From assembly GCA_002104905.1 (NCBI GenBank), contig MCFE01000014.1:62001-126000 (forward strand): DNA of 64,000 nucleotides. The letters are read 5' to 3'. Below are positions 12,774-63,336 of the stretch, one piece after another. The notes under the pieces are model-generated. The model was not told the DNA's origin, did not search any database, and saw only the letters and a program-made list of their open reading frames with translations. The stretch is from Basidiobolus meristosporus CBS 931.73. Lineage: Eukaryota > Fungi > Basidiobolomycota. The position numbers and the translations under genes are program-made. Positions within the stretch are counted from its first letter, which is position 1. Each line of letters begins with the position of its first letter.

Positions 12774-14390
12774 TGTTGTAAGAGTCTTTGTGATATTAGA
12801 AGTGATTGGGAAAACAAGTAGATTATGTATGCTTAGGAAGGTCCCAAGAACATATGTGCAAAGTGTGGGGCTTTTTTGACAACTTTGAGAATCTTCATGT
12901 TCTAGGTATCTGATACTTTGTTGAAAATAATCTGAGCAATTCCCAACAAGGAACTTGGTCTTTATTCTCTATGATTTGCAGGTAATGGTCTGGGCAACTA
13001 TGCTAGGTGAATATTCAGGTGGAGCTGCAAATGCTTACAACACCCCCACTCAGCTATATGTTCATTTGTACTAGTCCTAATCTTGACCTAAGATAATCAC
13101 ATTTTCTCTAGCTAATGGCTTGGTGAGTATGTCTGCAATCATTTTATCTGTGGAGCAGTAAACTAAGTTAACCATGTGATTTCCTATAGTTTGGCATATG
13201 AAATGATGTCTAATATATATGTGCTTGGCTCAGGCATGAATAGGTTGATTTCTACATGATTGTATATATCATTGATTATTTTGAAATAGAGTAGTAAGTG
13301 TTTTTGACATAAGCCTAAATCTTTAAAAGGGTTTCTTAGCCACATTGCTTCTTTTGTTGCTTCACAGGCTGCCATATACTCTGTCTCTGTGGTAGAAAGT
13401 GCCACAGTTGGTTGCTTTCTTGAATTCTGTGAAATTGCTCCTTCAGAGCAAAGAAAGGTGTATCCTGCAGTGGATCTTTTGTCTTCTAAGTCTGTCCCCA
13501 ATCAGCATCAGAGTATCCCACAAGATCCTGTTCTGAATCCTTAATGGAGCACCTTAAGCAGGTATCAGCTGTTTCTCTTAGGTATCCAAAGTCTGCTCAA
13601 CTACTGCAATATGTTTAGATCCACAGTTTTGATTATGCTGGCAGATGGCTCCCACTGGATATGAGATATCAGGAGGTGTCCCAAGCATGATTTACATCAG
13701 ACTGTCAACTGTAGAGCAATATGGGAACTCTGAGCTTTCAGATAGCACCATGCTCTCTTGATTTGGTTGAGTTTTGACCAAGTAAAGGTTTGTCTGCATT
13801 TGGGCACCTACAGGCTTACAGTCTCCCATTTGATGCTTTATTGGGATATCTTGAATATACTTGGACTGGCTGAGGGTGATAGTGTGTATACTTCTGTCTA
13901 TGGAGAACTTTGTTCCTAAGCAGTAACTGAGTTCTCCTAGATCAGACATCTTGAACTCCTTAAATATGCTGGTTATAGTCTGATCCAAGGTTTTTTGGGT
14001 ATTAGTGGCTATAACAGTATCATCCACATATAGAGCAGATAGAGCTGGATTAGCTATATCTGGCTCATAACAGATACTATGGTCAGAAGTGCTCCTTTGG
14101 AAATGCAATGATTCCAAATAAGAATCTATCTTGCAATTCCAGGCTCTTGGTGATGGTCTCAGACCATATAGAGATTTTTAAGCTTGAGGACCAAATGGGG
14201 GTTATCTTGATTAACAAGCCCGTCAGGATGGTCCATGAACATGTCCTCATCAAGTTCTCCATTCAAAATGCAGTTCTTGCATCCATTTGATGAAAAAAAA
14301 CTTGTACTTTGCAGCAACACCTTATGAAAAATAAATTGGTCCTGTGGATAGATCCAATCCAGATCAGCTGTCAAGATCTTATAAGGAAAC
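12774..14390 (-). mobile_element. Ty1/copia family C remnant: RT/RNase H and 3' LTR (12774-13042)
   Basis: [55 protein letters not shown]; polypurine tract next to an internally deleted LTR. Confidence 0.88.
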
Positions 14391-14659
14391 CACTATAATA
14401 CCAGTAGCTTGACATTAATGACCATATATACTATTTTACAACAGGATCACAAAGGCATTTGGATAATTCTACAGCCAAATAAAAATAAAAAACATAACAG
14501 TGTTTGTATGGTGTTTTGACAAGAGTGGCATGGCATTGTTGTGGTCTTAGTGCACTCTATAGCTCTTTGAGTGGATCTAACCAGCCAGTACATCCAAATG
14601 ACAGCCTTGTTGCAGGCCTCCAATGGCATTATTTTGGCAGTATTTCAACCTACAGCTAG

Positions 14660-17600
14660 TTCTGTATAATGCTACTGGCTTAAGCAACTTATCATTGGTG
14701 ATGGAAACCTAACACCAGAGGAGATACTGTTATTCAAGGAGACCTTGAAAAGGTATGATAAGGTCTTCTCATATAATGACAAGGAGATGGGACTCTTAAA
14801 GACATTGGTTGAAAAACCCATCAAGATTCATACAGTGCCCCACACACCCTGGTCATTTAAGCCTTACCCACTGCCCAGAGGACTCCAAGCTGATGTGCAT
14901 GACCTACTAAAGAAGAAGATAGAAGCTGGCATCCTAGAACCTTGCTATGGACCCTGTGCTAACAGATGATTTGTGACCAAAAAGAAGAATGGAAAGCTCC
15001 AATTCATTCAAGACATACAACCTGCAAATGCTGTCACTATCAGAGATGCTGCTATACCTCCATCTATTGATGACTTTGCAGAAAGTTTAGTGGCCACTCC
15101 ATCTACTCAACATATGATCTCTACTCAGGATATGACCAGATCCCCCTTGATGAGACATCAAGAGATATGTTTGCACTACAGACACCATTTGGACTGTTAA
15201 GGATGACAAGACTCAGTCAAGGGGCTACAAACTCTGTGGCTCAGTTCCAGAGATGCATGGTAAATGTGCTGTGTCAGTTTATACCTGAGAAACTTGCTGT
15301 CTTTGTGGATGACATAGGCATCAAAGGATCAAAATTCTGGGACACCACTGAAGTTATGCCTGGAGTAAGAAAGTTTGTCTATGACCATATTGCAGACAAT
15401 GATGCCATATTAGGAGCCATTGAAGAAGCTGGACTCACCATCAGTGGTGAGAAAAGCAGCTTTGGTGTATCAGAGATATCCATTGTTGGACAAAAATGCA
15501 ACACCTTTGGTCATTCACCTGGAGACTCCAAGACACAAAAGATATGCAACTGGCCTACCCCCACAAATCTCACACAAGCTTGTGGCTTTGTGGCTGCTTG
15601 TGGGTTCTGTAGGATCTGGATCCCAAGATTTTCTGAGATAGCAGAACCAATTTACCAACTACAGAGAAAGAACACCCCATTTATCTGGGGAGAAGAACCA
15701 GAAGAAGCCATGCAATTACTGAAAGAGGCCTTAGTATCTCCACCAGTTCTAAGACCTCTTGACTATCAAAACACTGAATGCCCACCTATTTTGACAGTGG
15801 ATGCAAGCCCTATAGGAGCTGGAGCACTACTTGGACAAGATGATGAAGATGGCAACTGCTATGCCTGCAGATATGAGAGCTGCCTATTCTCTCCTAGAGA
15901 ACAAAGATACTCACAGATTAAGAGAGAACTACTAGGAGTTGTGAAGATGCTGAGGAAACTGAAGTCACAACTCTACATGACACATTTTATTCTGGAGACA
16001 GATGCCAAGCCACTTATAGGAATGATCAACAAGCCTGACCTACCTGATGATGCCACAAACCAATGGATGGCATGGCTGAAAATGTTTGACTTTGAGGTCA
16101 AACATATCCCTGGCAAGACAAATGTTGTGGCTGATGCACTCTCCAGGAAGGGACCACAATTATTTGAAGACTTGGACCCTCACTTTGATGATATTATTGA
16201 TGCAGGGATCTGACAGATTGCCATCAAAGACCAAGAGAGAGCTACTTGGAGTCTGATCAAGGAATATCTAAGGACACTTAAGAAACCTGGTTGGATGGAA
16301 ATTCAGGAGTTTAGAAAACTCAGGAAGAAGGCACATCACTACTATCTTAAAGATGCTCTTCTCTTTAAGCAAGTGAAGCCTAGACTTATGCCAAGAAGAG
16401 TAGTCACTACCCCTCAAGAGCAACTGAACATCATGACAAGTATCCACCAAGGAGAACCAGGAGGACATAGAGGACAAGAAGCCACCTACAATACCACAGC
16501 TCAGAGGTACTACTAGGAAAACATGTACTATGATATCCAGCACTTTGTTGAGTCATGTGTAGCCTGCCAGAAGAGATCCTCCAAGCGTTATGAAGAACCA
16601 CTGCATCCTACTTACACAATCTGTCTATGGCAAAAGGTTGGTATTGACCTTGTCCACATGCCAACAGCTGGATCAGAAAAGTACCTGATTGTTGCTAGAG
16701 ATGACCTTAGTGGATGGGCAGAGGCTCAAGCCTTGCCCAACAACAAGAGCCATACCATATGGAGATTTATACTTGAAGACATCATCTGCAGATTTGGCTG
16801 CATCCAACAGTTTGTTGCTGACAGAGGAGAGATGACATCCCAAATGATCCAGGAGTTGTGCTCAAAGTACAAGATACACATTGCTTTTACAACAGCTTAC
16901 CACCCTCAAGCCAATGGAATGATAGAGAGAGGAAATGGACCATTGGTCAACTCTCTTGTCAAGACCTGTGAGAATAACACAACACTATGGCCACAGCAAT
17001 TACATCTAGCACTCTGGGCAGATAGAATTACTACCAAGAGAACAACTGGATTATCTCCATTCAAGCTACTCTATGGACATGACTGCATACTACCAGTTGA
17101 GTTAAACATAGTCACTTGGAACTCATTGAATTGGAGATCCAATATGCAGACTGAAGACCTCCTTGCAACTTGCATTCAGCAACTTGATCACCATGACTTG
17201 AATATCAGCAGAGCTGCTGAACAACTTAAGGATACACAACTAAAGAACAAGGTGCCCTTTGACAAATCACACCCAATAAGACCAAAACCACTATCACTAG
17301 GAGACCCAGTACTACTCTATGATTCCACCTTGGACAAACAATGGAGTCGGAAGTTTGACAACAAATGGACTGGCCCCTACCTCATTTCCAAAGTGATTGG
17401 TAATGGAAGTTATTACATATCTGAGCTTGACAACACCCAGTTGAGAGCACCAGTTGCTGGAAACCAACTCAAGTTGTTCAAGCATGGGAATTTTGCACAT
17501 CAAGATTAGTTTGCTTTGACTCAAGTTCAAAGCTGAGAGGGGGTTGAACCCTCTGGCACCTACTTAGAACATTCTTAGGTCATTCTGATGTCATTCAGAT

Positions 17601-18257
17601 TTCTATTGATATCTGGAACCTTCTGGAACACCTTGATTTGTAATTACTCAGCCAGTAAGAAAAGTATATAAGGGAGGCTATCCCTCAACAATAAATCATC
17701 ATCCCTTTTATCAATATACCAACTTGTTGATTAGTGTGATCACTGCTACCTGCTGCTACCTGAACTTCCAACCCCAGACCACAGGACACTCCCAGGAAAC
17801 TGCGCTGACAGCCAACTGACCTTGGAGGCACTACTTGTGAGGAATACTCAGAGTAGGTATCTTTTATTATATTTGATTCTTTCCCAAGTTTGTTCTTGTA
17901 CAGGCAAAATACTTTTCTGTCTTTGTAACTATTGACCACAGCTGCATTCTTATCAAGTCCCTGCTGGTGGAGTTTACAGTTGTTTTGACTTTGGAAGCTT
18001 TAGTACATTGTCATCTCAAAGGACGCTGAACCCAGCACATACTTTTGTTAAGACGCCAACTAAGTTGGGGATTGTAGCTCAATAGTTTTCCCTTGACAAG
18101 CTTATGGCTTTATTCCCCTTCACATTAGATTAAAGACAGAACCCAAGTATTCCTAGCAAGCTTTTGCCAGAGGTTATTGCACCCAGTGAACACCCCACAC
18201 ACAAAACACTTGAGAAGTGTTGGACATATCTCTCCCTTGGACCTATGCACCACCACA
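14660..18257 (+). mobile_element. 5'-truncated non-chromoviral Ty3/gypsy (Ylt1-like lineage, inferred): degenerate RT-RNase H-integrase and 3' LTR (~17545-18257)
   Basis: RT QGATNSVAQF..VFVDDIGIKG, RNase H TVDASPIGAG..ETDAKPL..ADALSR, integrase H..H..C..C, VGIDLVHMP, ADRG, YHPQANGMIERGN, WTGPY; stops/frameshifts; PPT GAGAGGGGG at 17535-17543; LTR ends ...CACCACA like the solo LTR at 47535-48523. Confidence 0.85.
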
Positions 18258-19811
18258 GCACGGTTTGATCATTCTGGTACTCCATTTTTTGTGGGGAGTA
18301 TAGTACCACAGTATCTTGCTTTATTCCATGAGTCTTGAAGAAGTTCACAAAGAGTCTTGAGGTATATTCTCTACCATTGTCAGAGCATATTTTCATAAAT
18401 TTTCACTAGTTTCTTGTTCCAACATGACTTTAAGCTCCCTGAGCTTAGACAGAGCTTCCTACTTTCTTTTCATGAAGTAATCCCATATGTATCTTGAATA
18501 ATCATCAATAAAAGTGATTGAATACTTCATCCCACCTAAGTATAAATCTTGCCTAGGTCCAAGCAGATCTGACTGAGTTAGATCTAATTTCCTCTGAGTT
18601 TTGAGCAGCCCAGAGTTCTTGAGCAGCTGTTTGGCTTGTTCCCCATATATGCAGGCTTCACAGTGCTCCAAATTGGCTGGGGGATTAGTTTTTACTCCAG
18701 AAATTAGTTGATCTTTGATCATTTTTGCCCAAATAATCAAGTTACTTGTATTGGCTTCCAAATGTGCTAGAATACATGTCAACTTATATATATTCTGATC
18801 CCTGATACCCAATGCAATATGAGTACCATCTTGATTAGTAATCCCACCACCAGAACTGTCAAGACTGAAACTGAGTCCTTTTGTGGTGGCCTTGCTGACA
18901 TATAGTAAGTCCTTCTTGGTTATTACTGGTACATAGAGTACTTCTTTGAAGGTAAGTATGTGGCTTCCTTCACCACTTCTGAGGCTCACTTGAATAGATC
19001 CTTCTTGCACTGCATCAAGTGTTCTATTGTCACCCACAAGAACCTTCTTGTTTGGAATATCTTGATATAGGGTAAAAAGGTCTTTTTGGTGTTTAAAGTG
19101 TTGGCATACTCCAGAGTCAATATACCACATCTAATAATCCTGGTTTTTGGCTTTATTTTGTGCCAATATGATTAGTTTATTTTCAATTATTGCAGTATAT
19201 TTATATTCAGGCTTCCTTTACTGATTTTCTCTCTTCTTGAAGAACTGGTCTAATGTATGACCTTTCCTTTTGCAGTAGTTGCAAAACATGTTGCTGTTGT
19301 TGTAAAAATTTGTAATTCTACCTAAATGCTTACCTAGCTTAGTCACTTATATCATTACCTTTAAATCCTAGAAAATACCGTCCAAGTTCCTTGTTGGTAT
19401 TTACTTAGAATAATATCACCAAAATATCATGTACCCAAAACATGAAAATTCTCAAGGTTGTCCAAACAGCCACAAACTTTGCAAACATATTCTTGAGACC
19501 TTCCTAAATCTATTCTACATGTTTGTTATGCCAAGGCCATGTAAATGTATAAATACTACTTTTGCATTCAATAAATCATTAGGTGAAACCTCATAATCTA
19601 CTTGTCCTCCCAATCACTTCTAGTATCTCCAAGCTCTTAGAACAGGTTACAAACCCCAAGCTGTCACTCTCTGCAATATCAACTATTGCTATTACTGGAA
19701 TTTTCCCCTATGCCAAAAAGTTGGATGGGTCTAACTACCAAGTGTGGAAGGTGAAGATGAAGATGCTGCTACAAGAAAGAGGCCTTTGGAATATTGTCAT
19801 GGGAGAAGAGT

Positions 19812-21115
19812 TGTGGTAATGGAAAGTATTCCATTACTACAATATCTCTAAACCAATATTGCACTCATTTCTTTATTTTACTTTTTGCTATTATAACACA
19901 CAAGTGAAAGATCAAGAATTTCCAACTTTGAAGAATAAATGCTCCAGACCCTGACAAGCAATCCACCCAAGAATATTATGTCATACAGAACACGTAGTAG
20001 CCAACACATGTTTCAAATTACAGCTCATTTGAAGCAGTACTTAAGGAGTTATGACCAAAAGAGTCCAACTATTATATATACTATGCCTTATTGCTAGGAT
20101 TGCTATGATGACTTTGATCGCGTGTAACTTTTGAACCAGCAAATCAAATCACGTGAGATTCTCACAGGTGCTGCGCCTATGTCCAATCTGCGTCACTGCA
20201 AAATTTTAGCTTTGTATCACGTGTATTGCTTGCGCAATTGCCCAAAAACTTTAATCCTTCAAAATTTTCATATATATGACTTCCCCAGCTGAAAAATAAA
20301 GGGAGAGCCTCTCTTTCCAGAATCTCCACACTACAATTACAAGTTTAAAGGTTATAAACTTCCCCTGCATCACTTGCACTGTTGAGTATTCTGACTTTGA
20401 TCAGTACTACATCAGTAAAGAGACTGCAAAGCTCACAAGAATCCAATCTAAGTTCTATAAGAAACTACCACTTTTCTGTCGGAAAAGTCCCCTCTAAGAA
20501 ACCCCTTTACTCTAAAGACACCCCTTTAGACACCCCTTTAGTCTAAAGACACCCCTTTAGACACCCCTTTAGTCTCAAGACACCCCTTTAGACACCCCTT
20601 TAGTCTAAAGACCCCTTTAGAGACCCCTTTAAGAAACCCCTTTACTCTAAAGAAGCCCCTTTAGGCACCCCTTTAGTGTAAAGTCCACTTTAGAGACCAC
20701 TACAAGAAGCCCCTTTACTCTAAAGACACCCCTTTAGACACCCCTTTAGGTCTAAAGACCCCTTTAGAGACTTCTACAACACACCCCTTTAGGTTAAAGG
20801 GGAGTTCAGAATTTTCATATTAGGAAATATTTTCTCAGAAAGGAAAGTGACTTCCAAATAAGGAAAAGTTACTATAAAAGTAAATAAGCCCATTAGTCAA
20901 CAGAAGGTCAGAACACTGCTGTAGAAGTGATAAACACTGCCTACAGTATATTTTGAGCCCAAGATTGAGGAAATTAGTGAAAGTTATATCTTCTATTGGT
21001 ATATCAAACTCCCAATAAACTATTTCAGTATTAGCATACTGGAAGTTGTTGTATATTGTTGATTAGCCTCTACATTGTAGAACAAGCCCCAAACTAATCA
21101 TAATACAACACAACA
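19812..21115 (+). mobile_element. Solo LTR, 1304 bp, inserted in copia gag
   Basis: TGTGG...CAACA termini; 4-bp flanks GAGT/GAAT; copia gag resumes on both sides; TATA 20271-20277 and AATAAA 20295-20300; second copy at 52930-54172 in opposite orientation. Confidence 0.85.
20488..20802. repeat. Tandem CCCCTTTAG-type minisatellite within the solo LTR (31-nt higher-order unit)
   Basis: About 18 CCCC tracts in motif ACACCCCTTTAG; GTCT(A/C)AAG anchors at 20541, 20572, 20603 give a 31-nt period. Confidence 0.9.
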
Positions 21116-24100
21116 GAATGTGCTTTCAAAAACATGGGAGGGGAATCCTTAAAGTAACATAAGAAAGAACAAAGTGCCTTTAACTGTGTTTGTGTCAATG
21201 TCAAAGACAAATTGCTATTTCAATGCTCAAGAGCAAAAATGGCAAAGAATGTCTGCAAGGCTTCAGAAGAAGCCCATCAGTCATGTTCAGCTGCCAATAA
21301 AATGTACCTGAGACAAAAATTCCTGACTACTAAGAAGATGCCAGGAGTAGAAGTAAAAAATATAATTAACAGAATAACCCTGCTGGTGGATGAGATGGAA
21401 TATGTGGGCACACCAACTACTGATGAGTATGGGATAGTGACCATCCTGAATAGCTGGACAGACATGTTTCAGGGTGCTGTATCAGCCCTAGAGTCCAGAA
21501 CTGAAGATTTGACCCTAAATAATGAATATGAAAAGCTCCTGGATGAAGAATTACAAAAATCAAGTGCCAATAAGAAGGAGTAAGAAAATGCACTAATAAG
21601 CAATGATAACCAACAAAGAAGGTACCCAAGACACTACAAAGGCAACAGTAGCCTGCTTTGCAACTACTCCAAAAGGAAAGGACACACATCAGAGTGGTGT
21701 CTAAAAGAGTGAGATAATCAGCAAAAGAAGCCTCAATGTGGAAATGCTGCAAAAACAAAAGACAGACTATTCACATGTGCACTAAATATGACCACAGGCA
21801 AGGATTTTCAGATGTGGCACACTGACTATGGAGCATGTCAACACCTACACACCAAAAAGAACTTTTTACCCAATATCATGAAATTCCAATCAAGAAGGTT
21901 TTCATGGGTGACTTTGGTACACATTGATGCAGTGGGTGAAGGTACTATCCAAGTAAACCTTAAAAGCAGTGAAGGAAGCAGTACACTGACCTTCAAAGAT
22001 GTACTCTGTGTACCAAAATAGTCAAGAACCTACTATCTGTAAGCAAGGCCACTGCAGAAGAACTCAGTTTCAGCTTTGTCAATTCTGGATGCAGGATCAC
22101 TGATTAAAATGGTGCCCATGTTGCTTTGGGTATCTGACATCAGAGTTCATACAAGTTGACTTATATTCCATCATATCTGAAAGCCAATACAAGTAACTTA
22201 AATGAAGAAACACCAATGTTTTGGCACAGGATAATTGGAGATATCAATCTTGATTATGTGAGCCAAATGATCAAAGATCAGCTAATTTCCAAAGCAAAAA
22301 TTGATCCCCCAGCTGATTTGGAGCACTGTGAAGCCTGCATATATGGGAAACAGGCCAGATACTGCTCAAGAGCTCTGGGCTAATCAAAACTAGGAAAAAA
22401 CTAGATCTAATTCACTCAGATCTGTGTGGAATTATGAAAAATATTTTCTTAGGCAGGATGAAGTATTTAATCACCGTTATTGATGATTATACAAGATACA
22501 CATAGGTCTACATCATGGAGAGAAAGGGGGAAGCTCTGTCTAAGTTCAGGGAGCTTAAAGCCCTGGCAGAGGGAGAAACTGGTGAAATAATCAAGAAAAT
22601 GCACTCAGATAAGGGTGGAAAATATACCTCAAAGCTCTTCATGCACTTCTGCAAGATTCATGGAATGAAGCAAGAAACTACTGTTCCATACTCCCCACAG
22701 AATAATGGAGTAGCAGAATGTGCAAACAGATCAATAATTGATGTGACAAGATCAATGATCTGTGATCAAAAGATGTCCTATGATTTTTTGTCAGAGTCAG
22801 TTGCCACAGCTATATACCTTAAAAATAGGAGTTATAGCAGAATACTTTGTGATTAGACTCAGCTAGAAGCATAGTATGGATACAGACCAAGTGCAGAACT
22901 TCTAAGAATAGTTGGGTGTACAGCATTTGCCAAGAAACTGCATGGAAATCAGTCAAAACTTGAGCCAAAAAGTGTAAAATGCATATTATTGTGTCACTGC
23001 AATGAGAGTACAGCATAAAGACTCTACAATACCAAAGCAAAGAAGCTGATCAAGTACAGGGATGAGTTGTTTGATGAAAATTCAAGATATTTACAAAAAT
23101 TGACATCAGATGATGATGAAAATTTGATCACAAGTCCACCAATAGTCAGGATTGAATCAGAGCTAAACAATGAAAATTTTTTCACTCCAGAGATCTCTAC
23201 AACTGTGATTCAGCCAGAATCAGTGCAGTTCAGGGATCTGCAATGACTGAGCAATATCAGGTCCTAATGGAAAATCAAACTTGGGACTTAGCCATATTAC
23301 CAACCAATCAAAAATCAATTGTATGCAGATGGGTCTTTAGGACAAAGTATAAGGCTGATGGGACAATTGAAAGATACAAAACAAAAGGATAACTTGATGA
23401 GGTTATGTGTATGGACCAGCCTGATGGGCCTGTTAACCAAGATAATCTCCCGTTTGGTCTGCAAGCCTAAAAAACTTCCATATTGTCTCAAACAATCTCT
23501 AAGAGCCCAGAATTGCAAGATAGATTCTTATTTGGGATCTTTGAATTTCAATAGAAGTAATGCCAAATATGGTATATACTATAAGCCAGATAGAACAAAT
23601 CCAGTTCTATTAGCTCTATTTGTGGATGATCTTATTATAGCTGCCAATAACCTAGAGACATTGAAACAGACTAAATCCAGTCTATCTAAAGAGCTCAAGA
23701 TGTCCAATCTAGGACAACTCAGTTACTGCTTAGACATATAGTTCTCCATAGACAGAGGTACCCAGACTATTGCCCTAAGCCATTCCAAGTATATTCAAGA
23801 TAGGTTTGATGTATATTATGCTTGGAACATATCCAGATATCTCATATTCAGTGGGAGTTGTCAGCCAGTATAATGACAACTGGGACCTGATCATTTTGCA
23901 GCAGTTAAGGAGATTTGTAGATATATAAAAGGAACTGTTGATAACTGCTTAAGATACACTTATAAGGTTTCAAAACAGGATCTTGTTTGATACTTCAATG
24001 CTGATTGGGGACAAAACTTATACAACAGAAGATCCACCACAGGATATACCTTTCTTTATTGTCAAGGAGCAATTTCATGGAATTCAAGAATGCAACCAAC

Positions 24101-25128
24101 TGTAGTACTCTCCACTACAGAGGCAGAGTATATGACAACCTGTGAAGCAACAAAAGAAGCAATGTAGTCAAGAAAGCTTCTGATAGATTTCAACCTACAT
24201 CAAAAATTTCCATTAATTTATTTCAAGATAATTAAGGATGTATATAATTAAGTAGAAATCCAACTTTTCATGCCAGGACCAGCATGCAGATACTGGAGAT
24301 CATTTCATATGGGAAACTTAGACAATGACTTGTTTATCTCAGTTTACTGTCCTTCAGATGAAATGATTGCAGACATATTTACCCAACCATAAGCTAGAGA
24401 CAAGTTTGAATATCTTAGGTCAAAATTAGGACTAGTCAGTATGAACATTTAGCAGAGTGGGAGTGTTGTAAAAGTTTGTAATTCCGCCTAAATATTCACC
24501 TAACTTAGTCCCTCAGATCCTTACCTTCAATCCTGGAGAATACTGTCCAAATTCCTTGTTGGGACTTACTTTGAATAATTTTACCAAAATACCTTGTATC
24601 CAGGACATGAAAATTCACAAAGTTGTTCAAAGAGCTACAAGCTTTGCACACATGTTCTTGGTGTTGTAAGAGTCTTAGAGATATGGGAAGTAATTGGGAA
24701 TACAAGTAGATTATGTGGCTTTTACTTAATGACTTATTGAATGTAAAGCTAGCATTTATACTTTTACTGTCATGATCACATGACAACCATGAACACCCAT
24801 GCCAAGTTTCAGCTTCCTAGCTCAATTTCTAAGAGATTCCTTCTGGAACCTTCTACCACCTTCCAGAAAGTTCCTGAACATTTCAAACCATTGTTACACA
24901 ATGGAACATTCCATGGAAGCTTTCCATCATATTTTTTATAGTCCAGTACCATATATGGAAATACCAGGTCACATGACTTAGTCACATGATCAGGTGACCC
25001 AATCCATTTCCCCATTCTGTCTCAGTGCCGTGTCATCTATGTCATTACCCCCAGCACCATTGCTGTGCCTCACCCCACAACCCCATTAGTATTAGCTAAT
25101 ATCTCTTGGCATCAGTATAGCCAAAAAG

Positions 25129-25309
25129 TATATATAGTCCTATCCCCCCTTAAGTATTCCTCAGTCTGATAAACACGGGTCTTGAATAAACAGCCTTGCC
25201 TTGGAAATCCGCCTTGCCTTGTTGATCCACACCTAAGTCCTTTCCTGGTCCTGCCTTGCCTAGCTCTACTCTCCTGCCTTGTGTCTATTCATAACAGTTT
25301 TATCAGACT
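25129..25309 (+). promoter_or_regulatory. Chromovirus LTR promoter, inferred transcript 5' end and self-complementary PBS
   Basis: TATATA 25129-25136; AGTCTGATAAA 25163-25173 is the exact reverse complement of TTTATCAGACT 25299-25309 just after the LTR; AATAAA at ~25185. Confidence 0.8.
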
Positions 25310-25359
25310 CTCCTGACTTACCTGTGGATCCCTGCCTTCTGCCCAAAGTTTGAAGAAAA

Positions 25360-25679
25360 CTTGTAAAAGGAATACTCACCGTAAGTATCACCCATCATCT
25401 TTCCCTAGTCTTGTCCTATAAAGGCAAAGATACTTTATCTTTGTAAAACTATTGGTCAAAGCTACATTCACTTTATTACCCTGCTGGTGGAGTTTACAGT
25501 TGTTACAGTATTGGAAGCTTTAGTACAATACTCTATCAAAGGACGTTGAAACCAGTACCTTCTGAAGTGACGCTAACTTATTTAAGTTGGGGATTGTGGC
25601 TCAATAGTTGTATTCTTGACATACTAGTGGCTTTACAAACCCACAACCTAGTTTAGTATATTCTAGTATTCCTTGCAAG
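25360..25679 (+). ncRNA. Putative conserved structured RNA module in the retroelement 5' leader (also 17834-18160 + and 47634-47960 -)
   Basis: Conserved blocks and compensatory base changes between two gypsy lineages; GT splice-donor consensus at 25381; see findings. Confidence 0.6.
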
Positions 25680-25702
25680 TTCATCCGCCTTCCTCTGCTA
25701 CC

Positions 25703-26635
25703 ATGTCCAACCTAGAGCTGAACTTTGCCCAGCTCATGGCTGCCTTTACCCAACTGCAGCAAGACCATGCAGACCTCAGAAACACTCTTGCTCAGTTCCA
25801 GAACCAAAGTGTCCAGCAAACTAGCCATGTCCCAGTCTACCAAGAGCCCAAGTATACTCCTGCTACCAAGTTCAATGGCTCTCAGAATGAATTCCGTGGC
25901 TTCATCAATATGGTGAAGAACAATCTTGCACTCCAGCCCAACTGGTACCCCAATGACCAGGCCAAAGTTGGTTTCATCTCCAACCTGCTTACTGGTACAG
26001 CTCTCAAGTGGTTCTCCCCATTAGTGGAGACCAACTCTCCCCTCCTCAGAGACTACCAAGCTTTTCTCACTGAAATGGAGCTAGCATTTGGTAACCTTGA
26101 CCAAGCCAGAACTGCTGCCAACAAGATCAAGACCCTCAAGCAAGGGAACAAACCAGCATCAGTCTATGCCTCAGAATTCCGACAACTCTCCAGTGACCTC
26201 AGCTCCTGGGGTCAAGCAGCCTTGATTAGCCAATTCCAAGATGGCCTCAATGATGAAGTTTGTGATCTGCTACTCACACTCCCAGATCCGGATACATTGG
26301 TTGAAGCTATGCACCAAGCAATCCGGTGTGATAACAGACTATTCCAGAAGAAGCAAAAGAACCGTCAAAGACACATTCCTGTTGCAGTCCCAGCCCCTCC
26401 TGCTCCCCAAGTCACTCCAGATGATCCTATGCAGATTGATAGTGCCAAATACAAGAAACTATCAAAGAGTGAAAAGTCTAGACATCAACAAGCCAACCTC
26501 TGTCTATACTGTGGCCAATCAGGTCACTTTGCCAAATCCTGCCCCAACAAGAAGTCCAGCTTCAAGCTGATGCAGTCCTCCAGCAACCAACCTGATTCAG
26601 ATCTGTCGGGAAACTCCAATGTCCAGTTGCACTGA
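25703..26635 (+). CDS. gag: Chromovirus Gag (retrotransposon gag domain + CCHC zinc knuckle)
   Basis: ATG at 25703 in GCTACCATG context; [47 protein letters not shown]. Confidence 0.92.
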
Positions 26636-29600
26636 CAGGCTTGCAACTGGACCCACCCATGAAAATCCAGCATATCCAAGAATCTTCCTTTGCCACAAAA
26701 TCTATCCAGTCCTTGAGAATGCCTGTCAAAATCCAGGTCCCTGACTCCAGTCCTGTCCCAGCCCTAGCCCTGATTGATTCCGGTGCTTCATCCTGTTTCA
26801 TTGACCAAGCCTTTGTCCAGAAGCACTCTATTCCTGTTACCTTGAAATCCTGTCCAGTCCAAGTAGAAGTTATTGATGGAAGATCACTCTCCTCTGGTGC
26901 CGTTACCCATGAAACATGCTTACTCCAGCTGTCCAGTACTGCCCACCAAGAAAGAATTGCCTTCAACATCATCAACTCACCACACTATCCTATTGTGCTT
27001 GGAAGCTCATGGCTGAGCTATCACAATCCAAGTATTGATTGGAAATCCAAGATCCTGTCATTCACCAGATCCCACCAAGTCAACTCCATGAAATCTCCAG
27101 ACCCTGATAACCGTGAAAAGACTGTTGCCAACAGTTCAACAGCCCAAGATACCTTGCCAGCTGAAGGAGCCCCCTCAGCAAACATACCAGCCAAGTACCA
27201 AGAGTTTGCCCATGTCTTTGACAAGAAGAAAGCAGAACTCCTCCCTGACCATTGGCCTTATGACTGCCCTATTGACCTTGAAGATGGAAAAGTCCCTCCA
27301 TTTGGCCCAATATATAACCTCTCCCAGCCGGAGTTGAAAGAACTCCATGGTTATATTGAAGAAAACCTCCAGAAGGGTTTTATTCAGCACTCCATATCAC
27401 CTGCTGGAGCCCCAATCCTCTTTGTCAAGAAGAAGGATGGCACACTCAGAATGTGTGTGGACTACCGTGCTTTGAATAAGATCACAGTCAAGAACCGCTA
27501 CCCCCTGCCCCTGATCAACACACTGTTGGATCAGCTATCTGCTGCCCAAGTCTTCACCAAGATTGACTTGAGAGGAGCTTACAATCTTGTCAGAATCAAG
27601 CCCGATGATGAATGGAAAACTGCCTTTCGCACAAGATATGGTCACTTTGAGTACAAAGTAATGCCATTTGGCCTCACCAATGCCCCTGCTGTGTTTCAAC
27701 ACCTCATGAATGACATATTCCGTGAATACCTTGACCATTTTGTGGTAATCTACCTTGATGATATTCTCATATACTCCAAGAGCCAAGATGAACATGATGA
27801 ACATGTCAAGAAAGTATTGAGAAAACTAGACTCTGCCGGTCTCTATGCCAAGCTAGAGAAGTGTGAATTTGACCAGAGAGAAGTGGAATTTCTTGGTTAT
27901 CTCATCAGCCCTGAGGGAACAAGAATGGACCCAAAGAAAGCTGACTCAGTCCAATCCTGGAAAACTCCAAGCTCAGTCAAGGAAGTACAATCCTTCCTGG
28001 GATTTGCCAACTTCTATTGCAGGTTCATAGCCAACTACTCCAAGATAATCACCCCTCTGACAAAGCTTACCCAGAAGAACACACCTTTTGCCTGGAATGA
28101 GGAGCAATCCAGCTCATTCAACCAACTCAAGAAATCTTTCCTGAAGGCCCCCCTGCTTGCCCACCCTGACCTTGAGAAGCAATTCATAGTGGAGACTGAT
28201 GCTTCTGATTTTGCCCTTGGTGCCATACTCTCCCAGTATGATGAGGACAATATGTTGCACCCCATTGCATTCTACTCTTGGAAGTTTTCCCCTGCAGAGA
28301 TCAACTATGATATCTATGATAAGGAGTTGCTTGCTATCATTGTAGCCTTTGAGCAATGGAGACACTACCTGGACGGTGCAAAACACAAAATCAAAGTCTG
28401 CTGTGACCATAAGAACCTTGAGTACTTTGCAACTTCCAAGGTACTAAACCGGAGACAAGCCAGATGGTCACTCTTCCTGTCCAGCTTTGACTTTACTATC
28501 ACCTATAGACCTGGTGCAAAGCAAGGAAAGCCTGATGCCCTGTCCAGAAAAAAGGAATATGCCCTGGAAGAGGGAGATGATGCCTGTCGGCAAATGGAAC
28601 ACCCATTGCTGAGCAAGAAACATTTTGAGATTCTTGCCACCCAGTCCTCAAGTCTTGTCATCCCTTCATTCTTAGTAAGGATATCAGAATCCCAAGCCTC
28701 TGATATGACTTCCAGCACTATCAAGAAATATCTGGAATCCCCAGTTGGGCCCCCTCCCAAGTTCCCAAACATCCAGAACCTGCATTTGGTAAACAACCTC
28801 ATCTACCACAAGCAGCAGCTTTATGTCCCAGACCTTGCCACCCAGCTAGACATCATTAAGTCTCGGCATGATTCAATGGCTGCAGGCCACTTTGGTACTG
28901 CCAAAACCTTGAATGCTATCAAAAGAGATTTCTGGTGGCCTAGAATGATAACGCTTATCAAAGAGTACATTCTGACTTGTGATATTTGCAACCATGCAAA
29001 ACCAGCCAGACACCAGCCCTATGGACTTCTTCAACCCCTGCCTATCCCAGAACACCAATGGAGATCTATATCTATGGACTTCATTACTGACCTCCCTGAG
29101 TCATGTGGCTTCAATGCTATACTTGTAGTGGCTGACCGGCTGACCAAGATGGCTCACTTTATCCCTTGCTGTAAGAACACTAATGCAAAAGAAACTGCTG
29201 CTTTAGTCCTGAAGAATATTTTCCGCCTTCATGATATCCCCAGTGATATTGTGTCAGATAGAGGCCCACAGTTTGTGTCCAAGTTTTGGAAACACTTCAT
29301 GCAATACCTTGGTGTTCAAGTCAAGCTCTCTACTGCCTTCCATCCACAGTCTGATGGCCAGACTGAAAGAATCAACCAGATTCTAGAGCAATACCTCCGG
29401 TGCTATATCAATTACCAGCAAGACAATTGGGTTGATCTACTCCCTGTTGCTGAGTTTGCCTACAACAACTCAAGCCATAGTGCAACCGGTTTTACACCAT
29501 TCTATGCAAACTATGGATTCCACCCTCAGTTTGATATCCAGATTCCAACAGACCCAATGAGCCCACATGCGGCTGAACATGCCCAAGCAATCCAGGACAT

Positions 29601-30156
29601 CCAGAACACCCTCAAGGAAGAGCTATCCTTAGTTCAGGAAATCTACAAGAAAGTTGCCAATCTAAAACAGCATCCCAGCCCTGATCTTAATGAAGGAGAT
29701 TTTGTATGGTTGCTCAGAAGAAACATCAGCACCAACCGCCCTTGTGACAAGTTGGATTTCAAGAAACTTGGTCCCTTCAAAATCAAGAAGAAGCTTAGCC
29801 CTATAGTATATCAGCTACAGTTACCAGCAAGTATGAAAATCCATGATACTTTCCATGTGTCCCTCCTGGAGCCGTATTGTAGGAACACATTGCCAAACCG
29901 GCAAGAAGCAAAGCCCCAAGCCATCCAGGTTGACCAACATCAAGAATTTGAAGTTAAACAGATTCTGGACTCCAAGTATATCCGGTCAAAGCTGTACTAC
30001 TTAGTAGACTGGATTGGTTATGATCCAAGTGACCAAACATGGGAACCAGCTACCCATCTCACTAATTGTCAAGATCTAGTTACCCAGTTCCACCAACAAT
30101 ATCCTGCAAAACCTGCCCCAAAGGGAAACAGAGCTTTGCCTGGAAGAGGAGAATAG
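26596..30156 (+). CDS. pol: Chromovirus Pol (PR-RT-RH-IN-chromodomain), -1 frame relative to gag, no own ATG before the protease
   Basis: ALIDSGA; YLDDILIYS; [21 protein letters not shown]; HHCC zinc finger, [19 protein letters not shown]; GPFKI; chromodomain [27 protein letters not shown]. Frame open from 26596. Confidence 0.95.
26608..26652 (+). promoter_or_regulatory. -1 programmed ribosomal frameshift signal
   Basis: Slippery heptamer G GGA AAC (26608-26614) in gag phase, 6-nt spacer, perfect 11-bp stem GTCCAGTTGCA (26621-26631) / TGCAACTGGAC (26642-26652). Confidence 0.88.
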
Positions 30157-33100
30157 TGTCATGATCACATGACAACTATGAACACCCATGCCAAGTTTCA
30201 GCTTCCTAGCTCAATTTCTAAGAGATTCCTTCTGGAACCTTCTACCACCTTCCAGAAAGTTCCTGAACATCTCAAACCATTGTTACACAATGGAACATTC
30301 CATGGAAGCTTTCCATCATATTTTTTATAGTCCAGTACCATATATGGAAATACCAGGTCACATGACTTAGTCACATGATCAGGTGACCCAATCCATTTCC
30401 CCATCCTGTCTCAGTGCCGTGTCATCTATGTCATTACCCCCAGCACCATTGCTGTGCCTCACCCCACAACCCCATTAGTATTAGCTAATATCTCTCAGCA
30501 TCAGTATAGCCAAAAAGTATATATAGTCCTATCCCCCCTTAAGTATTCCTCAGTCTGATAAACACAGGTCTTGAATAAACAGCCTTGCCTTGGAAATCCG
30601 CCTTGCCTTGTTGATCCACACCTAAGTCCTTTCCTGGTCCTGCCTTGCCTAGCTCTACTCTCCTGCCTTGTGTCTATTCATAACATTTACATGGTATTGC
30701 ATTACAGACATGTAGAATAGGTTAAGGAAGCTCCCAAGAGCATGTGTGCAAAGTGTGGGGCTGATTGGACAACTTATCTAATTTCATGGTATGGGTACCT
30801 GGCATTTTGGTGAGAATAATCTAAGTAAATCCTGACAAGGAATTTGGTCAGTATTCTTTAGGATTTGAAGGTTATGATCTAAGTGACTTAATTAGGTGAA
30901 TATTTAGGTGGAATTAAAAATCTTTACAACACTCCCACTTAGCTAAATGCTCATACTAACTACTCTGCACTTTGACCTAAGATACTCAAACTTGTCTCTA
31001 GCAAATGGTTTTGTAAATATGTCTGCAATCATTTCATTTGCAGGACAGCAAACTAAGCTAACTAAGTTATTCTCTATAGCTTCACATATGAAATGATGTC
31101 TTATATCTATGTGCTGAGTTCTAGCATAAAAAGTTAGATTTCTACTTAATTGTATATATCCTTGATTATCTTGAAATAAAGTAATAGGTGTATTTTGACA
31201 TATGCCTAAATCTATAAAAAGCTTTCTTAACCACATTGCTTCTTTTGTAGCTTCACAGGCTGCCATGTACTCTGCCTCTGTGGAAGAAAGTGCTATGGTT
31301 GGTTGCCCTCTTGAGTTCCATGAAATTGCTCCTTGACAGTGAAGAAAGGTGTATCCTGTGGTGGATCTTCTGTCTTCTAAATTATGTCCTCAATCAGCAT
31401 CAGAGTATCCTGCAGGATCCTGATCTGAATCCTTATAAGTGTATCTTCAGCAGATATCAGTAGTTCTTTTTGGATATCTAAAAATCCGCTTAACTACTGC
31501 AGTATGATCTGATCCATAGTTCTGATTATGCTGGCTGACAACTCCCACTGAATATGAGATATCTGGATGTGTTCCAAGCATGACATATATCAGACTGCCA
31601 ACCATAGATTGATAAGGAAAGTCAGGGTTTGCAGAGGGCACCAAGCTCTCTTGATTTGGTTGACTTTTGACCAAATCAATGTTTCTCTCCAATGGGGTAG
31701 CTGCCGGTTTACAGTCTTCCATTTCATGTTTTCTTGGTATATCCTGAATATGCTTGGATGGCTTAGGGTGATAGTCTGGGTACTTCTGTCTATGGAGAAC
31801 TTTATACATAAGTAGTAACTGAGTTCTCCTAGATTGGACATCTTGAACTCTTTAGATAGGCTGGATTTAGTCTCTTCCAATGATGCTAGGTTATTGGTGG
31901 CTACAATAAGATCATCCACATATAGAGCTAATAGAACTGGATTTGTTCTATCTGGCTTATAGTATTTGCTATTGTCAGCCTTACTCCTTTTAAACTCAAA
32001 GATCCCAAATAAGAATGTATCTTGCAGTAGCAGGCTTTTGGTGATTGTTTGAAGCCCTATAGAGATTTTTAAGCTTGCAGACCAAATGGGGGCTATCTTG
32101 GTCAACAAACCTCTCTGACTGGCCAATACACACATCCTCATCAAGTTCTCCATTCAAAAATGCAGCTTTTACATCTATTTGATGAATAAATAACTTGTAT
32201 TTGGCTGCAATAGCTAACATCAATCTGATGGAGTTAAAGTTGGCTACCAGTGCTGAGGTCTCAGTATAGCCAAGTCCTTTTGTTTGAGAGTATCTTTTGG
32301 CCACAAGTCTTGCTTTGAATCTTTCAATTGAATCATCAACATTGTACTTTGTCTTAAAGACCCATCTGCATCCAATTGATTTTTGGTTGATTGGTAATTT
32401 GACTAAGTCCCAAGCTTGATTTTCCATCAGGGCCTGATATTCCTCTGGCATTGCAGATCTCCAAAACTTTGTCTGAGGGCTATTTGGGGCCTCTTTTACA
32501 GTCAGGTGCTCATCAATATGGACTGAATAGGCATAGGCTAAGTTTGTACCCTCATTGATGTAGTAACTTGGGCTATTTCTTGTGTGGTTGAAACTTCTGG
32601 CATTTGATACTGAAATGATCACTTCTGGGATATTCCTAAGTACTGATTCTGGCTGAACCACAGTTGTACAGATCTCTGGAGTGAAAAAACTTTCATTACT
32701 TAGCTCTGATTCAATCCTGGCTATTGGTGGACTTGAGATCAAATTTTCATCATCAACATCTGATGTCATTTCATGTAAATATCTTGAATTTTGATCAAAC
32801 AACTCATCCCTGGACTTGGTCAGCTTCTTTGCTTTAGTATTATAGAGTCAGTAAGCCTTACTCTCATTGCAGCAGCTCAAAAATATGCATTTTACACTAT
32901 TTCACTGAAATTTTGACTGATATCCAGGCAGTTTTTTGGCATATGCTGTACACCCAAATATTCTTAGATGTTCTGCACTTTATCTGTAGCCATACCATGC
33001 TTTAAATGGAGTAGAATCACAAAGTATTCTGTTATACTCCAATTGTTAAGGTATACAGCAGTGGCAACTGATTCCACCCAAAAATTATAGGATAATCTTT

Positions 33101-36100
33101 GATCATAGATCATAGATCTTGCCATATCAATTATTGATCTGTTTGCATATTCTGCTACTCCATTTTGTTGTGGGGTGTATGGTACAGCAGTTTCTTTCTT
33201 TATCCAATGAGTCTTGCAGAAGTGGATGAAGAGTTTTGAGGTATATTCTCCACTGATGTCAGAGCGTATTTTCTTGATTTTTTCTCCAGTTTCTCCATCC
33301 ACCATGGCTATAAACTCCATGAGCTTAGACAGAGCTTCTTCCTTTCTCTCCATGCAGTAGACCCATGTGTATCTTGTATAATCATTGGTAAAGGTGATTA
33401 AATACTTCATCCCTCCTAAGGATAAATTTTGCAAAGGTCCACACAGATCTGACTGAAATAGATCTAATTTCTTCTTACTTTTGATTAACCCAGAGCTCTT
33501 GAATGGTTGTCTGGCTTGTTTCCCATATATGCAGGCTTCACAGTGCTCTAAATCAGCTGGGGGATCAATTCTTACTCCAGAAGTTAGCTGATCTTTGATG
33601 ATTTTGTTCAAATATTCAAAATGGATGTGCCCAAATCTCCTGGGCCAGGGCATTGTTGTTTGTTCATTTAAGTTACTTATACTGGCTTCCAAATATGATG
33701 GAATATAAGTCAACTTGTACAGATTCTGATCTCTGATACCCACAGCAAAATGGGCACCATTTTGATCAGTGATCTTGCATCCAAAATTGTCAAAGCTGAA
33801 ACTGAGTCCTTCTGCAGTGGCCTTGCTTATGGATAGTAGGTTATTGACTATTTTTGGTACATAAAGTACTTGTTTGAAGGTCAGTATGTGGCTTCCTTTA
33901 CTGCTTCTAGGTTTATTTGGATAGTTCCTTCTCACACTACATCAAGTGTCCTATTGTCACCCATGAAAACCTTCTTAACTGGAATTTCCTGATATTGGGT
34001 AAAAGTTCTTTTTGGCTTGTAAGGTGTTGACATGCTCCAGAGTCAATGTACCACATGAGGGAAGCCTTGTTTGTGGTCATACTTAGTGCAGATATGAATA
34101 GTCTATCTTCAGTTGTTGCAGCATTTCCATATTCAGGCTTCTTTTGCTGATTATCTCTCTTTTTGCAACACCGGTCTGATATGTGTACTTTCCTTTTGCA
34201 GTAGTTGTAAAACAGATTGCAGTGGTCTTTGTAGGGCCTTGAGTACTTCTTTTGCTGGTTATTACTGCTTATTACAGAATTTTTGTCTTCCTTCTTATTG
34301 GTGCTTGATTTTTTTATTCTTTGTCCAGGAGCCTTCCATATATGTAATTTAAGGTCGCATCTTTAGTTCTAGACTCTAGGGCTGATACAAGGCCCTGAAA
34401 CATGTCTGTTGGGCTATTCAGGATGATAACTACCACATCTTTATCAGTAGTTGGTATGCCCACAGATTCCATTTCATCTGCCAGCAGGGTAATTCTGTTA
34501 ATTAGATTTTCATTTCATCTGCTGGCAGAGTCTTTGCAGTAAAGAATTTTTGTCGCAGACAAATTTCCTTAGTAGCTGAACATGACTGGTAGGTATTTTC
34601 TAATGCCCTCCAGGCATTCTTTGCTGTTTTTGCTGTTGAGCATTGAATTAGCAATTTGGCTTTAACATCAAGGCAAATGCAGTTAAAGGTACTTTGTTCT
34701 TTGTTCTGGTACTTTAAAGCTTCCTCTCCCACATTTTTAGGAGGGCATTCTTCTCCCATGACAATATTGCAAAGGCCTCTTTCTTGTAGCAGCATCTTCT
34801 TCTTCACCTTCCACACTTGGAAGTTAGATCCATCCAACTTTTCTGCAGAGGGAAAAGTTCCAGTAATGGCAGTAGTAGACATTGCAGAAAGTGACAGCTT
34901 GGGGCTCATACCCTGTTGTAAGAGTCTTGGAGATACTGGAGGTGATTGGGAGGACAAGTAGACTATGTGATATTCACATAATGATATATTGAATATAAAA
35001 GTAGTATTTATACTTTTACATGGTCTTGGCATAAAAAGCATGTAAAATAGATTTAGGAAGGTCCCAAGAACATGTTTGCAAAGTTTGGGGCTGTTTAGAC
35101 AACCTTGAGAATTTTCATGTTTTGGGTATCTGATATTTTGGTGAAAATATTCTAAGTAAATCCCAACAAGGGATTTGGTCAGTATTCTCTAGGATTTGAA
35201 GGTAATGTTCTAAGTGACTAAGTTAAGTGAATATTTGGGTGGAATTACAAATTTTTACAACACTTGGGACCTTCCTAAGCCTATTACACATATTTGCAAT
35301 GTCAAGACCATTTAAAGTATATATGCTACTTTTGCATTCAATAAATCATGAAGTGAAACCACATAATCTACTTGTCCTCCCAATTACTTTCAATATCTCC
35401 AAGACTCTTACAGCCACTGCTGCTGTTGAAGGGTGTTTGGTACATCCTTTGCTGGCTATTATTGCCTATTAATGCATTTTCTTTTTCCTTCTTATTGGCA
35501 CTTGATTTTCTTAATTCTTAATCCAGGAGCCTTTGATACTCATAGTTGAAGGTTATATCTACTGTGTGGAATCTAGTGCTGATTCAAGGGCCTGAAGCAT
35601 GCCGATCAGGCTATTCCAAATGCTAAACATCACATCTTCATCAGTAGCTGGCAAACCTACAGATTCTATCCCATTTACCAATAGAATGAGTATGCCAAAT
35701 AGACTTTTATTTCTTCCCCTGAACACTTCCTGTTAGTGAAGAACTTCCTTCTAGAATAAATTTTCTTAGCAGCAGAGCATAACTAGTAAGTGTCTTCTAA
35801 TGCCTTCCAGTCATTCTTTGCTGTTTTTGCCCTTGGAAGTTGAATTAACAATTTGTATTTAATATTTATCCCAGTGCAGTTAAAGGCACTTTAGGGCTCC
35901 CTCTCCATCAATTTTAGGTGGGCATCCTTCTCCCATGACAACATGCCAAGTGCCTCTTTCTTATAGCAGCATCTTTATGTTACAAGTCTTGGTATAGGAG
36001 TTGTAGAGGAATAGGGAGTTTAACTAGTATTGTATTCACTAAAACTTGAACTAGACATTATTGAGAATCCAGCAGCTTCTTATATACATTTTGCCAGATC

Positions 36101-39860: not shown

Positions 39861-40404
39861 ACTAAGTCTTCCCAGATATTGCCTTGTTTTTCCACTAGTT
39901 GGTAAGTGGCAAATGGACATTCACCGATGATCTTGAATGGTCCTGTTCATTGCGGCTCAAACTTCTTTGAAGTGTTGTTTCTTAGCAATACAAAGTTCCC
40001 AACTGTCATTGCTTCTGGTGCTATAGTCTTATCAAATCTCTGCTTATCATTTCTGCACTTTGAGATACTTTGGTCTGAGCCTCTTGATGTCTTTGTTCCA
40101 GTTGCTGGTGTTTACTTGGCTAACTAAGTTCATCTTCTAAGGTGTCTGTAAGCTTTGGTTGTGTGAGATCTCCTGGAATCCTTGGCTCACATCCATACAC
40201 TAAGTAAAATGGTGATTGCTGGGTGGTGTTGTGTACTCTGACTCTGCATGCAAAGAGTGCTTGGTCCATATACTCATCCCATCTACTGACAACTCCATTT
40301 GCATACTTAGTAAGCATTTTTCCAGTTAATCCATTAAACCGCGCAGTGACTCCATTAGTTCTGGGGTAATATGCCAAGGTTTTCAAGTGTCTGACCTGCT
40401 GCAT

Positions 40405-63310: not shown

Positions 63311-63336
63311 ATCAGCTTAATTTATCTGGTTTTCCT

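Follow-up and report, generated by a model that had tools for sequence, protein, structure and literature searches.

The DNA analyzed here, referred to below as the window, is a stretch of 64,000 nucleotides (nt) from Basidiobolus meristosporus CBS 931.73 (contig MCFE01000014.1, positions 62,001 to 126,000 of the forward strand). It represents a nest of retrotransposons of the long terminal repeat (LTR) type located beside two host genes. One of these retrotransposons, an intact chromovirus, carries in its leader, between the primer binding site (PBS) and gag, a non-coding segment (the module) that is also present within the LTR of a second, unrelated gypsy family. The module is probably a discrete, portable and functional leader cassette that has moved between retrotransposon lineages. 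The features of the two families and of the three module copies in the window are as follows:

24768–30685, forward strand: intact chromovirus with module copy 1, recognized by its LTRs, target-site duplication (TSD), open frames and purine tract
25299–25309, forward strand: self-priming PBS, an 11-nt perfect complement of 25163–25173
25345–25682, forward strand: module copy 1, a complete cassette located between the PBS and the gag AUG of the chromovirus (nhmmer envelope and alignments)
15167–17509, forward strand: remains of pol in the second gypsy element (end of reverse transcriptase (RT), RNase H, integrase)
17545–18257, forward strand: LTR of the second gypsy family (713 nt), with a TATA box near 17663, AATAAA at 17701 and the module in U5
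17817–18167 (core 17923–18090), forward strand: module copy 2, in U5 of the second gypsy family's 3′ LTR
47535–48242, reverse strand: second copy of this LTR, standing alone and carrying module copy 3
47627–47977 (core 47703–47870), reverse strand: module copy 3, in the lone LTR of the second gypsy family

Comparison of the window with itself by BLASTN and nhmmer revealed that the leader segment recurs only at 17817–18167 (+) and 47627–47977 (−). The identity to the LTR copies is ~75% over ~245 nt by BLAST, and nhmmer returned E-values of ~1e-97 to 1e-104 over ~335 nt. Outside the module, BLASTN and nhmmer searches of the window detected no DNA similarity between the chromovirus and the second gypsy family, and their pol products share only 28–38% amino acid (aa) identity. 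An earlier interpretation of this locus (the sequence-only reading) had claimed that the segment is common to the chromovirus leader and the LTR of the other family, and that the rest of the two elements is dissimilar in DNA. Both claims were confirmed, and all the conserved blocks, stems and coordinates that it quoted are present in the window.

The two LTRs of the chromovirus (24768–25296 and 30157–30685) differ at 6 of 529 positions and the TSD of the element is TTTAC. Both the gag (25703–26635) and pol (26641–30156) frames are open. The pol gene encodes protease, RT, RNase H, integrase and a chromodomain (Pfam Chromo, 9.5e-14), and a purine tract (30142–30153) adjoins the 3′ LTR. Module copy 1 follows both the LTR end (25296) and the PBS and precedes the gag ATG (25703). 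Since the sequence complementary to the PBS (25163–25173) lies ~30 nt downstream of the TATA box, the transcript start is placed near 25163; the leader between this putative start and the gag AUG measures 540 nt. Poly(A) sites are predicted shortly downstream of 25186 and, in the second family, of 17701.

A self-priming mechanism based on complementarity between the transcript start and the sequence following the LTR has been described previously (PMC2864245). Both sides of this complement change together across four chromovirus families, with compensatory versions in loci L014, L143 and L002 (L002:2560–2716), which makes the pairing a clean covariation series for the mechanism. Like self-priming chromoviruses of the Tf1/sushi type, the carrier of the module has an integrase with a chromodomain and an 11-nt self-priming complement. 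However, the module is a separate block located ~40 nt downstream of the priming pairing. Because self-priming relatives lack the module, it is not part of the priming structure.

The second family, which the sequence-only reading had labeled Ylt1-like, is identified here as of the Ty3/gypsy type, with an LTR of ~710 nt placed after integrase. A purine tract precedes the LTR at 17545–18257. The 5′ part of the element (gag, protease and the start of RT) is missing, and the remainder consists of at least two reading-frame pieces with at least one break; no chromodomain was detected in the pol remnant. The lone LTR shows no matching TSD. The nearest relatives found for its integrase share no more than 47% identity, those bearing names originating from a rust fungus. 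No module was found in L144, the one relative analyzed.

Further leaders of related chromoviruses were taken from public assemblies, with gag serving as the query handle. Three of them, originating from the read sets ENA ERZ27274739 (L001), Logan ERR13998537 (L012) and ENA ERZ27260071 (L021), contain the module:

L001, 239–575: module in a chromovirus leader, lineage A (as the window chromovirus); gag 78% identical to the window gag
L012, 60–396: module in a chromovirus leader, lineage B; gag 50% identical to the window gag
L021, 1–249: module in a chromovirus leader, lineage B; gag 62% identical to that of L012; 5′ end cut by the contig edge

All six known copies are in sense orientation and in 5′ leaders. 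Their homology begins at the same ACTTGT in all three contexts, i.e. (i) 49 nt past the PBS in lineage A, (ii) 12 nt past the PBS in lineage B and (iii) inside U5. The named gag relatives come from Glomeromycotina. In seven related chromovirus families (gag identity 44–57%), nhmmer found no module, nor did the covariance model when applied to representative loci from each family. In three of the seven, the distance from the PBS to the gag AUG is only 31–40 nt. The gag of lineage B is 54–55% identical to those of module-less families and 49–51% identical to that of lineage A, and the seven module-less families are as near to lineages A and B by gag as these are to each other. The module is thus a cassette whose occurrence is patchy and discordant with the gag tree, and which is shared between lineages in a way not accounted for by vertical descent.

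The search for further copies covered the window, 21 fungal-type loci, two scans of JGI metagenomes and two of IMG/VR, but not the remainder of the source genome, and detected none. The first JGI scan gave no hit. The sole hit of the second, obtained with a pattern of two invariant blocks (L022:10767–10827), falls by chance on the beginning of a bacterial gene and is unrelated to the module (model score 15.5 bits, E 0.26). The IMG/VR scans, performed by DNA word and gag profile, returned only chance 15-mer matches and no relative.

The core of the module is 87.6% identical between L012 and L021, compared to 67.8% for gag DNA. The corresponding values are 75.9% and 65.4% for lineage A versus lineage B, and the two LTR copies are 92.9% identical within the module and 69.6% identical in the 5′ part of the LTR. 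The module therefore evolves more slowly than its surroundings in every comparison made. The core of the LTR family is as near to L001 (83–85%) as is the window copy (86%), which suggests that the transfer between lineage A and the LTR family took place late relative to the split of lineages A and B. Since the module is placed downstream of the PBS in chromoviruses and in U5 in the other family, the factor common to both contexts is the 5′ untranslated region (UTR) of the full-length RNA. This location on opposite sides of the PBS argues against a role in strong-stop synthesis or strand transfer. An interpretation of the invariant 21-nt block as a second tRNA primer site is not favored, as in one family this block is situated within an LTR.

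Profile models (nhmmer hidden Markov models and one covariance model, R1) were built from the non-coding segment. The structural analysis was based on six sequences representing three or four lineages, and the fold and its tests share the same data. The following structural elements were recognized in module copy 1:

25443–25613, forward strand: core domain composed of nested helices H1–H6 and side hairpin H7 (RNAalifold, covariance model R1)
25507–25532, forward strand: apical hairpin with a 7-bp stem (arms 25507–25513 and 25526–25532) and a 12-nt loop (25514–25525)
25447–25454 and 25602–25609, forward strand: long-range arms, confirmed in the sequence
25425–25443, forward strand: hairpin H0 (8 bp), upstream of the core and retained in all four copies from chromoviruses

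The six cores (~170 nt each) were aligned with MAFFT without structural guidance, and RNAalifold predicted 46 pairs in seven helices from this alignment. On the sense strand of this alignment, which was not fitted to any structure, the consensus energy is −26.7 kcal/mol, compared to −10.6±3.1 for column-shuffled alignments (z = −5.2, 0/200); the antisense values are −16.3 and −7.3±2.6 (z = −3.4). In the model-fitted alignment, 92% of the cells are paired and 15 pairs show compensatory double changes, values that were matched by only 0–1 of 500 shuffles. Slid controls, in which the partners were moved by 1–3 columns so that relatedness was kept, gave 31–44% paired cells and 0–5 double changes. 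Thus, the proposal of a covarying structure on the sense strand is borne out by the double-change pairs, the slid controls and the consensus energy.

The apical hairpin has a different stem in each of four lineages, and in six of its seven pairs both partners have changed; the final eight loop bases are invariant in all six copies. The three compensatory pairs that had been reported for this hairpin in the second family are present, but they are accompanied by two U-U mismatches. The AAGCUU palindrome in the loop is not a general feature: it is confined to lineage A and the LTR family, and L012 and L021 have different bases there. In helix 3, the two arms of the window copy, which are 95 nt apart, depart from the form found in the remaining five copies, but all 8 of their positions still pair. 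This rebuilding of both arms in the window copy explains the mosaic look of L001. A mosaic or recombinant origin of L001 was consequently rejected, since the window copy alone has the derived helix and the other five share the other form. Hairpin H0 shows one exchange of A-U for G-C in L021. Considering all columns, 42 of the 71 unpaired and 40 of the 91 paired ones are invariant.

A conserved tail located at 25622–25634 is complementary to the whole apical loop, 95 nt upstream (12 pairs, one bulge). The predicted energy of the loop-tail duplex is −9.9 kcal/mol, which is equaled by 1.5% of shuffled loops, and it is similar in L012 and in the 47k LTR copy. This complement could be a candidate for a pseudoknot or an alternative pairing. 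Alternatively, this tail could be paired with the AAGGC block that immediately precedes H0.

Scanning of the whole window with Rfam 15 at gathering thresholds gave no matches. Permissive Rfam scans of all module copies returned only chance-level matches (E > 1, 5–18 bits, compared to thresholds of 40–60). The statement that the module belongs to no known RNA family is therefore upheld with respect to Rfam, and the suggestions of a ribozyme or a riboswitch are left without support, as no Rfam family comes near threshold. Known snRNAs, snoRNAs and viral cis-elements were discarded on the same grounds.

Several observations concern the strand and the translation of the leader. G-U cells outnumber A-C cells in the six-copy alignment (21 vs. 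5). The six copies contain only two ATG trinucleotides, compared to 32.7 expected, which makes ATG the most depleted CpG-free trinucleotide (16-fold), while CAT occurs 37 times against an expectation of 37.7. In the intact chromovirus there are 10 ATGs in the 395-nt U3 and none in the 540 nt between the putative transcript start and the gag AUG. Since the depletion of ATG is strong and strand-specific, the module appears to lie in a sense 5′ UTR that is scanned by ribosomes, which argues against both an always-removed intron and a purely DNA-level role. The edge between the ATG-rich U3 and the ATG-free leader, taken together with the self-priming complement, offers a way of locating a transcript start without RNA data.

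Another chromovirus family, represented by L002, has a different leader module (L002:2745–2945), composed of a duplicated 113-nt unit with two hairpins of near-identical loops in each copy. Its leader, 442 nt from the putative start to the AUG, is again free of ATG. The position of this hairpin array, equivalent to that of the module, fits lineage-specific leader signals. The eight invariant bases of the module loop are also found directly before the L002 gag AUG, maybe by chance.

The CpG dinucleotide is scarce in the chromovirus leader (6 seen vs. 22 expected). Two CpGs (25544–25545 and 25571–25572) are situated in invariant unpaired blocks of the module; they are retained in the intact element and most other copies and lost in L001, whose leader has no CpG at all and the appearance of a decayed copy.

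As regards the surroundings, both the chromovirus and the second gypsy element are nested within diverged copies or fragments of Ty1/copia elements, which occur on both strands (10900–14400, 18263–24760, 30690–35300 and 56000–64000; Pol_BBD, gag_pre-integrase, rve and RVT_2 domains). A third gypsy remnant is located at ~40100–42200 (−). The host gene at 6963–8900 (−), split by a putative 63-nt intron (8225 to 8163), encodes a protein most similar to adenosylcobalamin-dependent ribonucleoside-triphosphate reductase (TIGR02505; 8e-49 and 3e-37 for the two exons). A reductase of this B12-dependent type is an unusual enzyme for a eukaryote. Positions 2128–4201 contain a 2-kb array with 33-nt periodicity, 60% G+C content and strong C skew, which is open on both strands; its minus strand reads as a glycine/tyrosine-rich repeat protein of ~650 aa that matches no NCBIfam family.

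It is likely that the module is a functional cis-acting RNA structure of the sense strand. A more specific role in packaging, i.e. in selection of the genome, is proposed tentatively, by analogy, and is plausible rather than probable. The same reserve applies to the best explanation taken as a whole, that of a portable cis-acting leader RNA including the genome-selection role. According to this explanation, the cassette would be transcribed in sense within the 5′ untranslated leader of the full-length retrotransposon RNA, and retained in the RNA scanned by ribosomes toward the gag AUG. Closed by an inverted repeat, its fold would include a small hairpin, nested helices forming a rod of ~170 nt with the invariant-loop hairpin at its tip, and a side hairpin. 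In this form it would act in cis on unspliced RNA as a recognition platform, in which contact would be made by invariant single-stranded parts (the 11 × 11 internal loop, rich in purines, and the final eight bases of the apical loop), with the stems only as a scaffold. Its role would be to mark the RNA as genome, that is to bind Gag and promote packaging, perhaps with dimerization or a loop-tail switch. A role on the full-length RNA is likely, and one in priming or strand transfer unlikely, because the position relative to the PBS varies and that relative to the cap and AUG remains the same. A platform for protein recognition is suggested because the covarying stems carry invariant single-stranded segments that are rich in purines. 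Of the portable cis-acting RNA envisaged in the sequence-only reading, the covarying sense structure shared across clades was retained; the palindrome and the donor site as general features were not.

Retroviral packaging signals recognized by Gag (PMC8096270, PMC7674771, PMC2987497) combine leader stem-loops, single-stranded purine stretches and long-range pairings. Like these packaging and dimerization (psi/DIS) elements, the module is located in the untranslated leader, near the PBS and before the gag AUG (in U5 in the second family), and its stem-loops covary and are accompanied by invariant, single-stranded purine-rich parts and long-range pairings. However, there is no relation in sequence or at the Rfam level, and the host is an LTR retrotransposon. 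Moreover, the self-complementary loop of the module is not conserved. The module is also optional within its clade and occurs on either side of the PBS.

Some of the results weigh against the proposed explanation. The sample is small (six sequences), the structure was derived from the same sequences that served for testing it, and the alignment used for counting pairs had been fitted to the model. Folding of single sequences is unremarkable (z = −2.1, −2.4 and +0.36) and equal on both strands, and the minimum-energy folds of L001, L012 and L021 differ from the consensus. Helix 4 has an A-C mismatch in both lineage B copies, and H0 is weak or not kept in the copies of the LTR family. A kissing-loop palindrome as a conserved trait is ruled out by its absence from lineage B. 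Related chromoviruses with leaders of 31–40 nt manage without the cassette, which consequently cannot be the sole means of genome selection. Finally, it is not obvious what an unrelated family with a different Gag would gain from a Gag-specific signal.

A rather unlikely alternative is that the fold recruits a cellular protein involved in nuclear export, RNA stability or translation under stress, and thereby aids any element that acquires it. Such a host-factor element would be in agreement with (i) the movement of the cassette between families whose pol products are only 28–38% identical, (ii) the fact that cassette-free families are at least as close by gag to lineages A and B as these are to each other, (iii) the apparent function of the cassette in two positions relative to the PBS and (iv) the scarcity of AUG, indicative of a scanned leader. 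The promoters of the carriers are also relevant in this respect. Heat-shock elements consist of alternating GAA and TTC blocks, and their three-unit pattern was used in a search of the window. Ten perfect three-unit arrays were found, compared to 0.8 expected, and nine of them are located in U3 of the chromovirus and second-family LTRs:

24841–24878, 30230–30267, 17616–17628 and 48159–48176: heat-shock-element arrays in U3 of the window LTRs

These sequences suggest that the LTR promoters of unrelated families may be stress-inducible. A leader for expression under stress would fit the perfect arrays present in both carrier families, but the module-less L002 family has six such arrays as well (L002:2358–2515), and a link between the module and heat-shock elements was therefore rejected. 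A general benefit also predicts a wider spread of the cassette than is seen with seven related families devoid of it, one of them with heat-shock elements, and so stable a fold (−45 to −76 kcal/mol) would be expected to impede translation when present in a leader that ribosomes scan. Portable export or packaging elements, such as constitutive transport elements and helper-packaged non-coding elements, are cis-acting RNA blocks movable between unrelated retroelements; no Rfam family of that kind, and no Rfam export or translation element, matches the module.

The presence of splice-like sites raises another possibility, considered quite unlikely, that the module is a facultative, introner-like leader intron of ~286 nt (25381–25666) whose structure joins the splice sites, the spliced form being the better gag-pol messenger and the unspliced form the genome. 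The sites and repeats in question are:

25381–25386, forward strand: donor-like hexamer GTAAGT (GTAGGT at 17853)
25358–25376, forward strand: 5′ arm of the terminal inverted repeat (closing helix), with the homology onset ACTTGT
25665–25681, forward strand: 3′ arm of the terminal inverted repeat, including the AG (25665–25666) of a putative acceptor

The donor-like hexamer (GTAAGT/GTAGGT) and the AG are kept in all four copies of lineage A and the LTR family, and the final bases of the exon are joined to the acceptor region through the closing helix. The earlier statements that a donor opens the module and that a conserved AG precedes TATTCC thus hold for these copies but not for lineage B: L012, the sole lineage B copy spanning the donor site, has T at its first position (L021 ends before the site), and both lineage B copies are devoid of the 3′ part with the AG. 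The core is nevertheless kept in lineage B at 82–88% identity. Fungal introner-like elements are longer than normal introns, have stable predicted structures with compensatory mutations and reside in unrelated genes (van der Burgt et al. 2012, reviewed in PMC3609843). The module resembles them in that it is longer than the host intron (286 nt vs. the 63 nt of one putative intron), has a stable fold with compensatory changes, occurs in sense in unrelated transcription units and has donor-like and acceptor-like ends in two of three lineages. However, only six copies are known, all of them in retrotransposon leaders, and the homology overruns the putative borders, starting 23 nt upstream of the donor and extending at least 13 nt past the AG. 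The 63-nt host intron (8225 to 8163) has CTAAC located 13 nt before its AG, and no host-like branch-point motif was found at a suitable distance from 25666. The 16-fold depletion of ATG inside the module is a further objection, as the unspliced form must then be read by ribosomes.

It is still less probable that the cassette is selfish, that is a small mobile element, similar to a miniature inverted-repeat transposable element (MITE) or of another kind, which inserts into transcribed DNA and spreads on its own account, and of which only sense, ATG-free copies in leaders have been tolerated by active retrotransposons. As in MITEs, the module is short (~330 nt), non-coding and strongly folded, and has terminal inverted repeats. 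The arms of the latter are complementary at 10/10 and 8/9 positions in copy 1 and at 13/15 in the LTR copy, and the outer inverted repeat that had been described (25367–25376 and 25665–25674) was confirmed. The homology onset at the same ACTTGT in three contexts, the patchy distribution, and the fact that the module is more alike between carriers than are the carriers themselves would also fit such an element. In contrast to MITEs, the module has no TSD, as direct repeats are absent from the flanks of all three copies in the window. Neither the 64-kb window nor any fetched locus revealed a free-standing copy, and the 3′ terminal repeat is missing from lineage B. The six copies all occur in sense in 5′ leaders, and their structure is maintained by compensatory change; a filter acting on insertions alone leaves unexplained the helices that remain paired while both arms change within one carrier lineage.

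It is highly improbable that the module has no RNA function and is a neutral recombination relic or a DNA-level regulatory block, with covariation arising from a small, related sample: although the sequences are few, the shuffle control ignores relatedness and structure and tests use the same data, the slid controls that keep relatedness fall to 31–44% paired cells and 0–5 double changes, the structural signal is stronger on the sense strand, the avoidance of ATG is strand-specific, the module is slower than gag in every comparison, and the apical hairpin has four different stems.

A more far-reaching proposal, which is speculative and doubtful, is that the module is a novel type of horizontally mobile RNA, a leader domain exchanged between unrelated LTR retrotransposons, being either a stolen genome-selection signal that allows RNA to ride in the particles of another family, or a parasite of parasites with a self-serving fold. 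Structured cis-acting leader RNAs are well studied in retroviruses. To our knowledge, they are almost undescribed in LTR retrotransposons of the fungal type, and none has been known as a cassette common to unrelated families. If the fold is functional, it would constitute a new RNA family to be curated and a natural marker of exchange between retrotransposon lineages at the level of RNA or DNA, and it would provide a route to asking how genome RNA is selected by these elements, or how they weigh its translation against its packaging.

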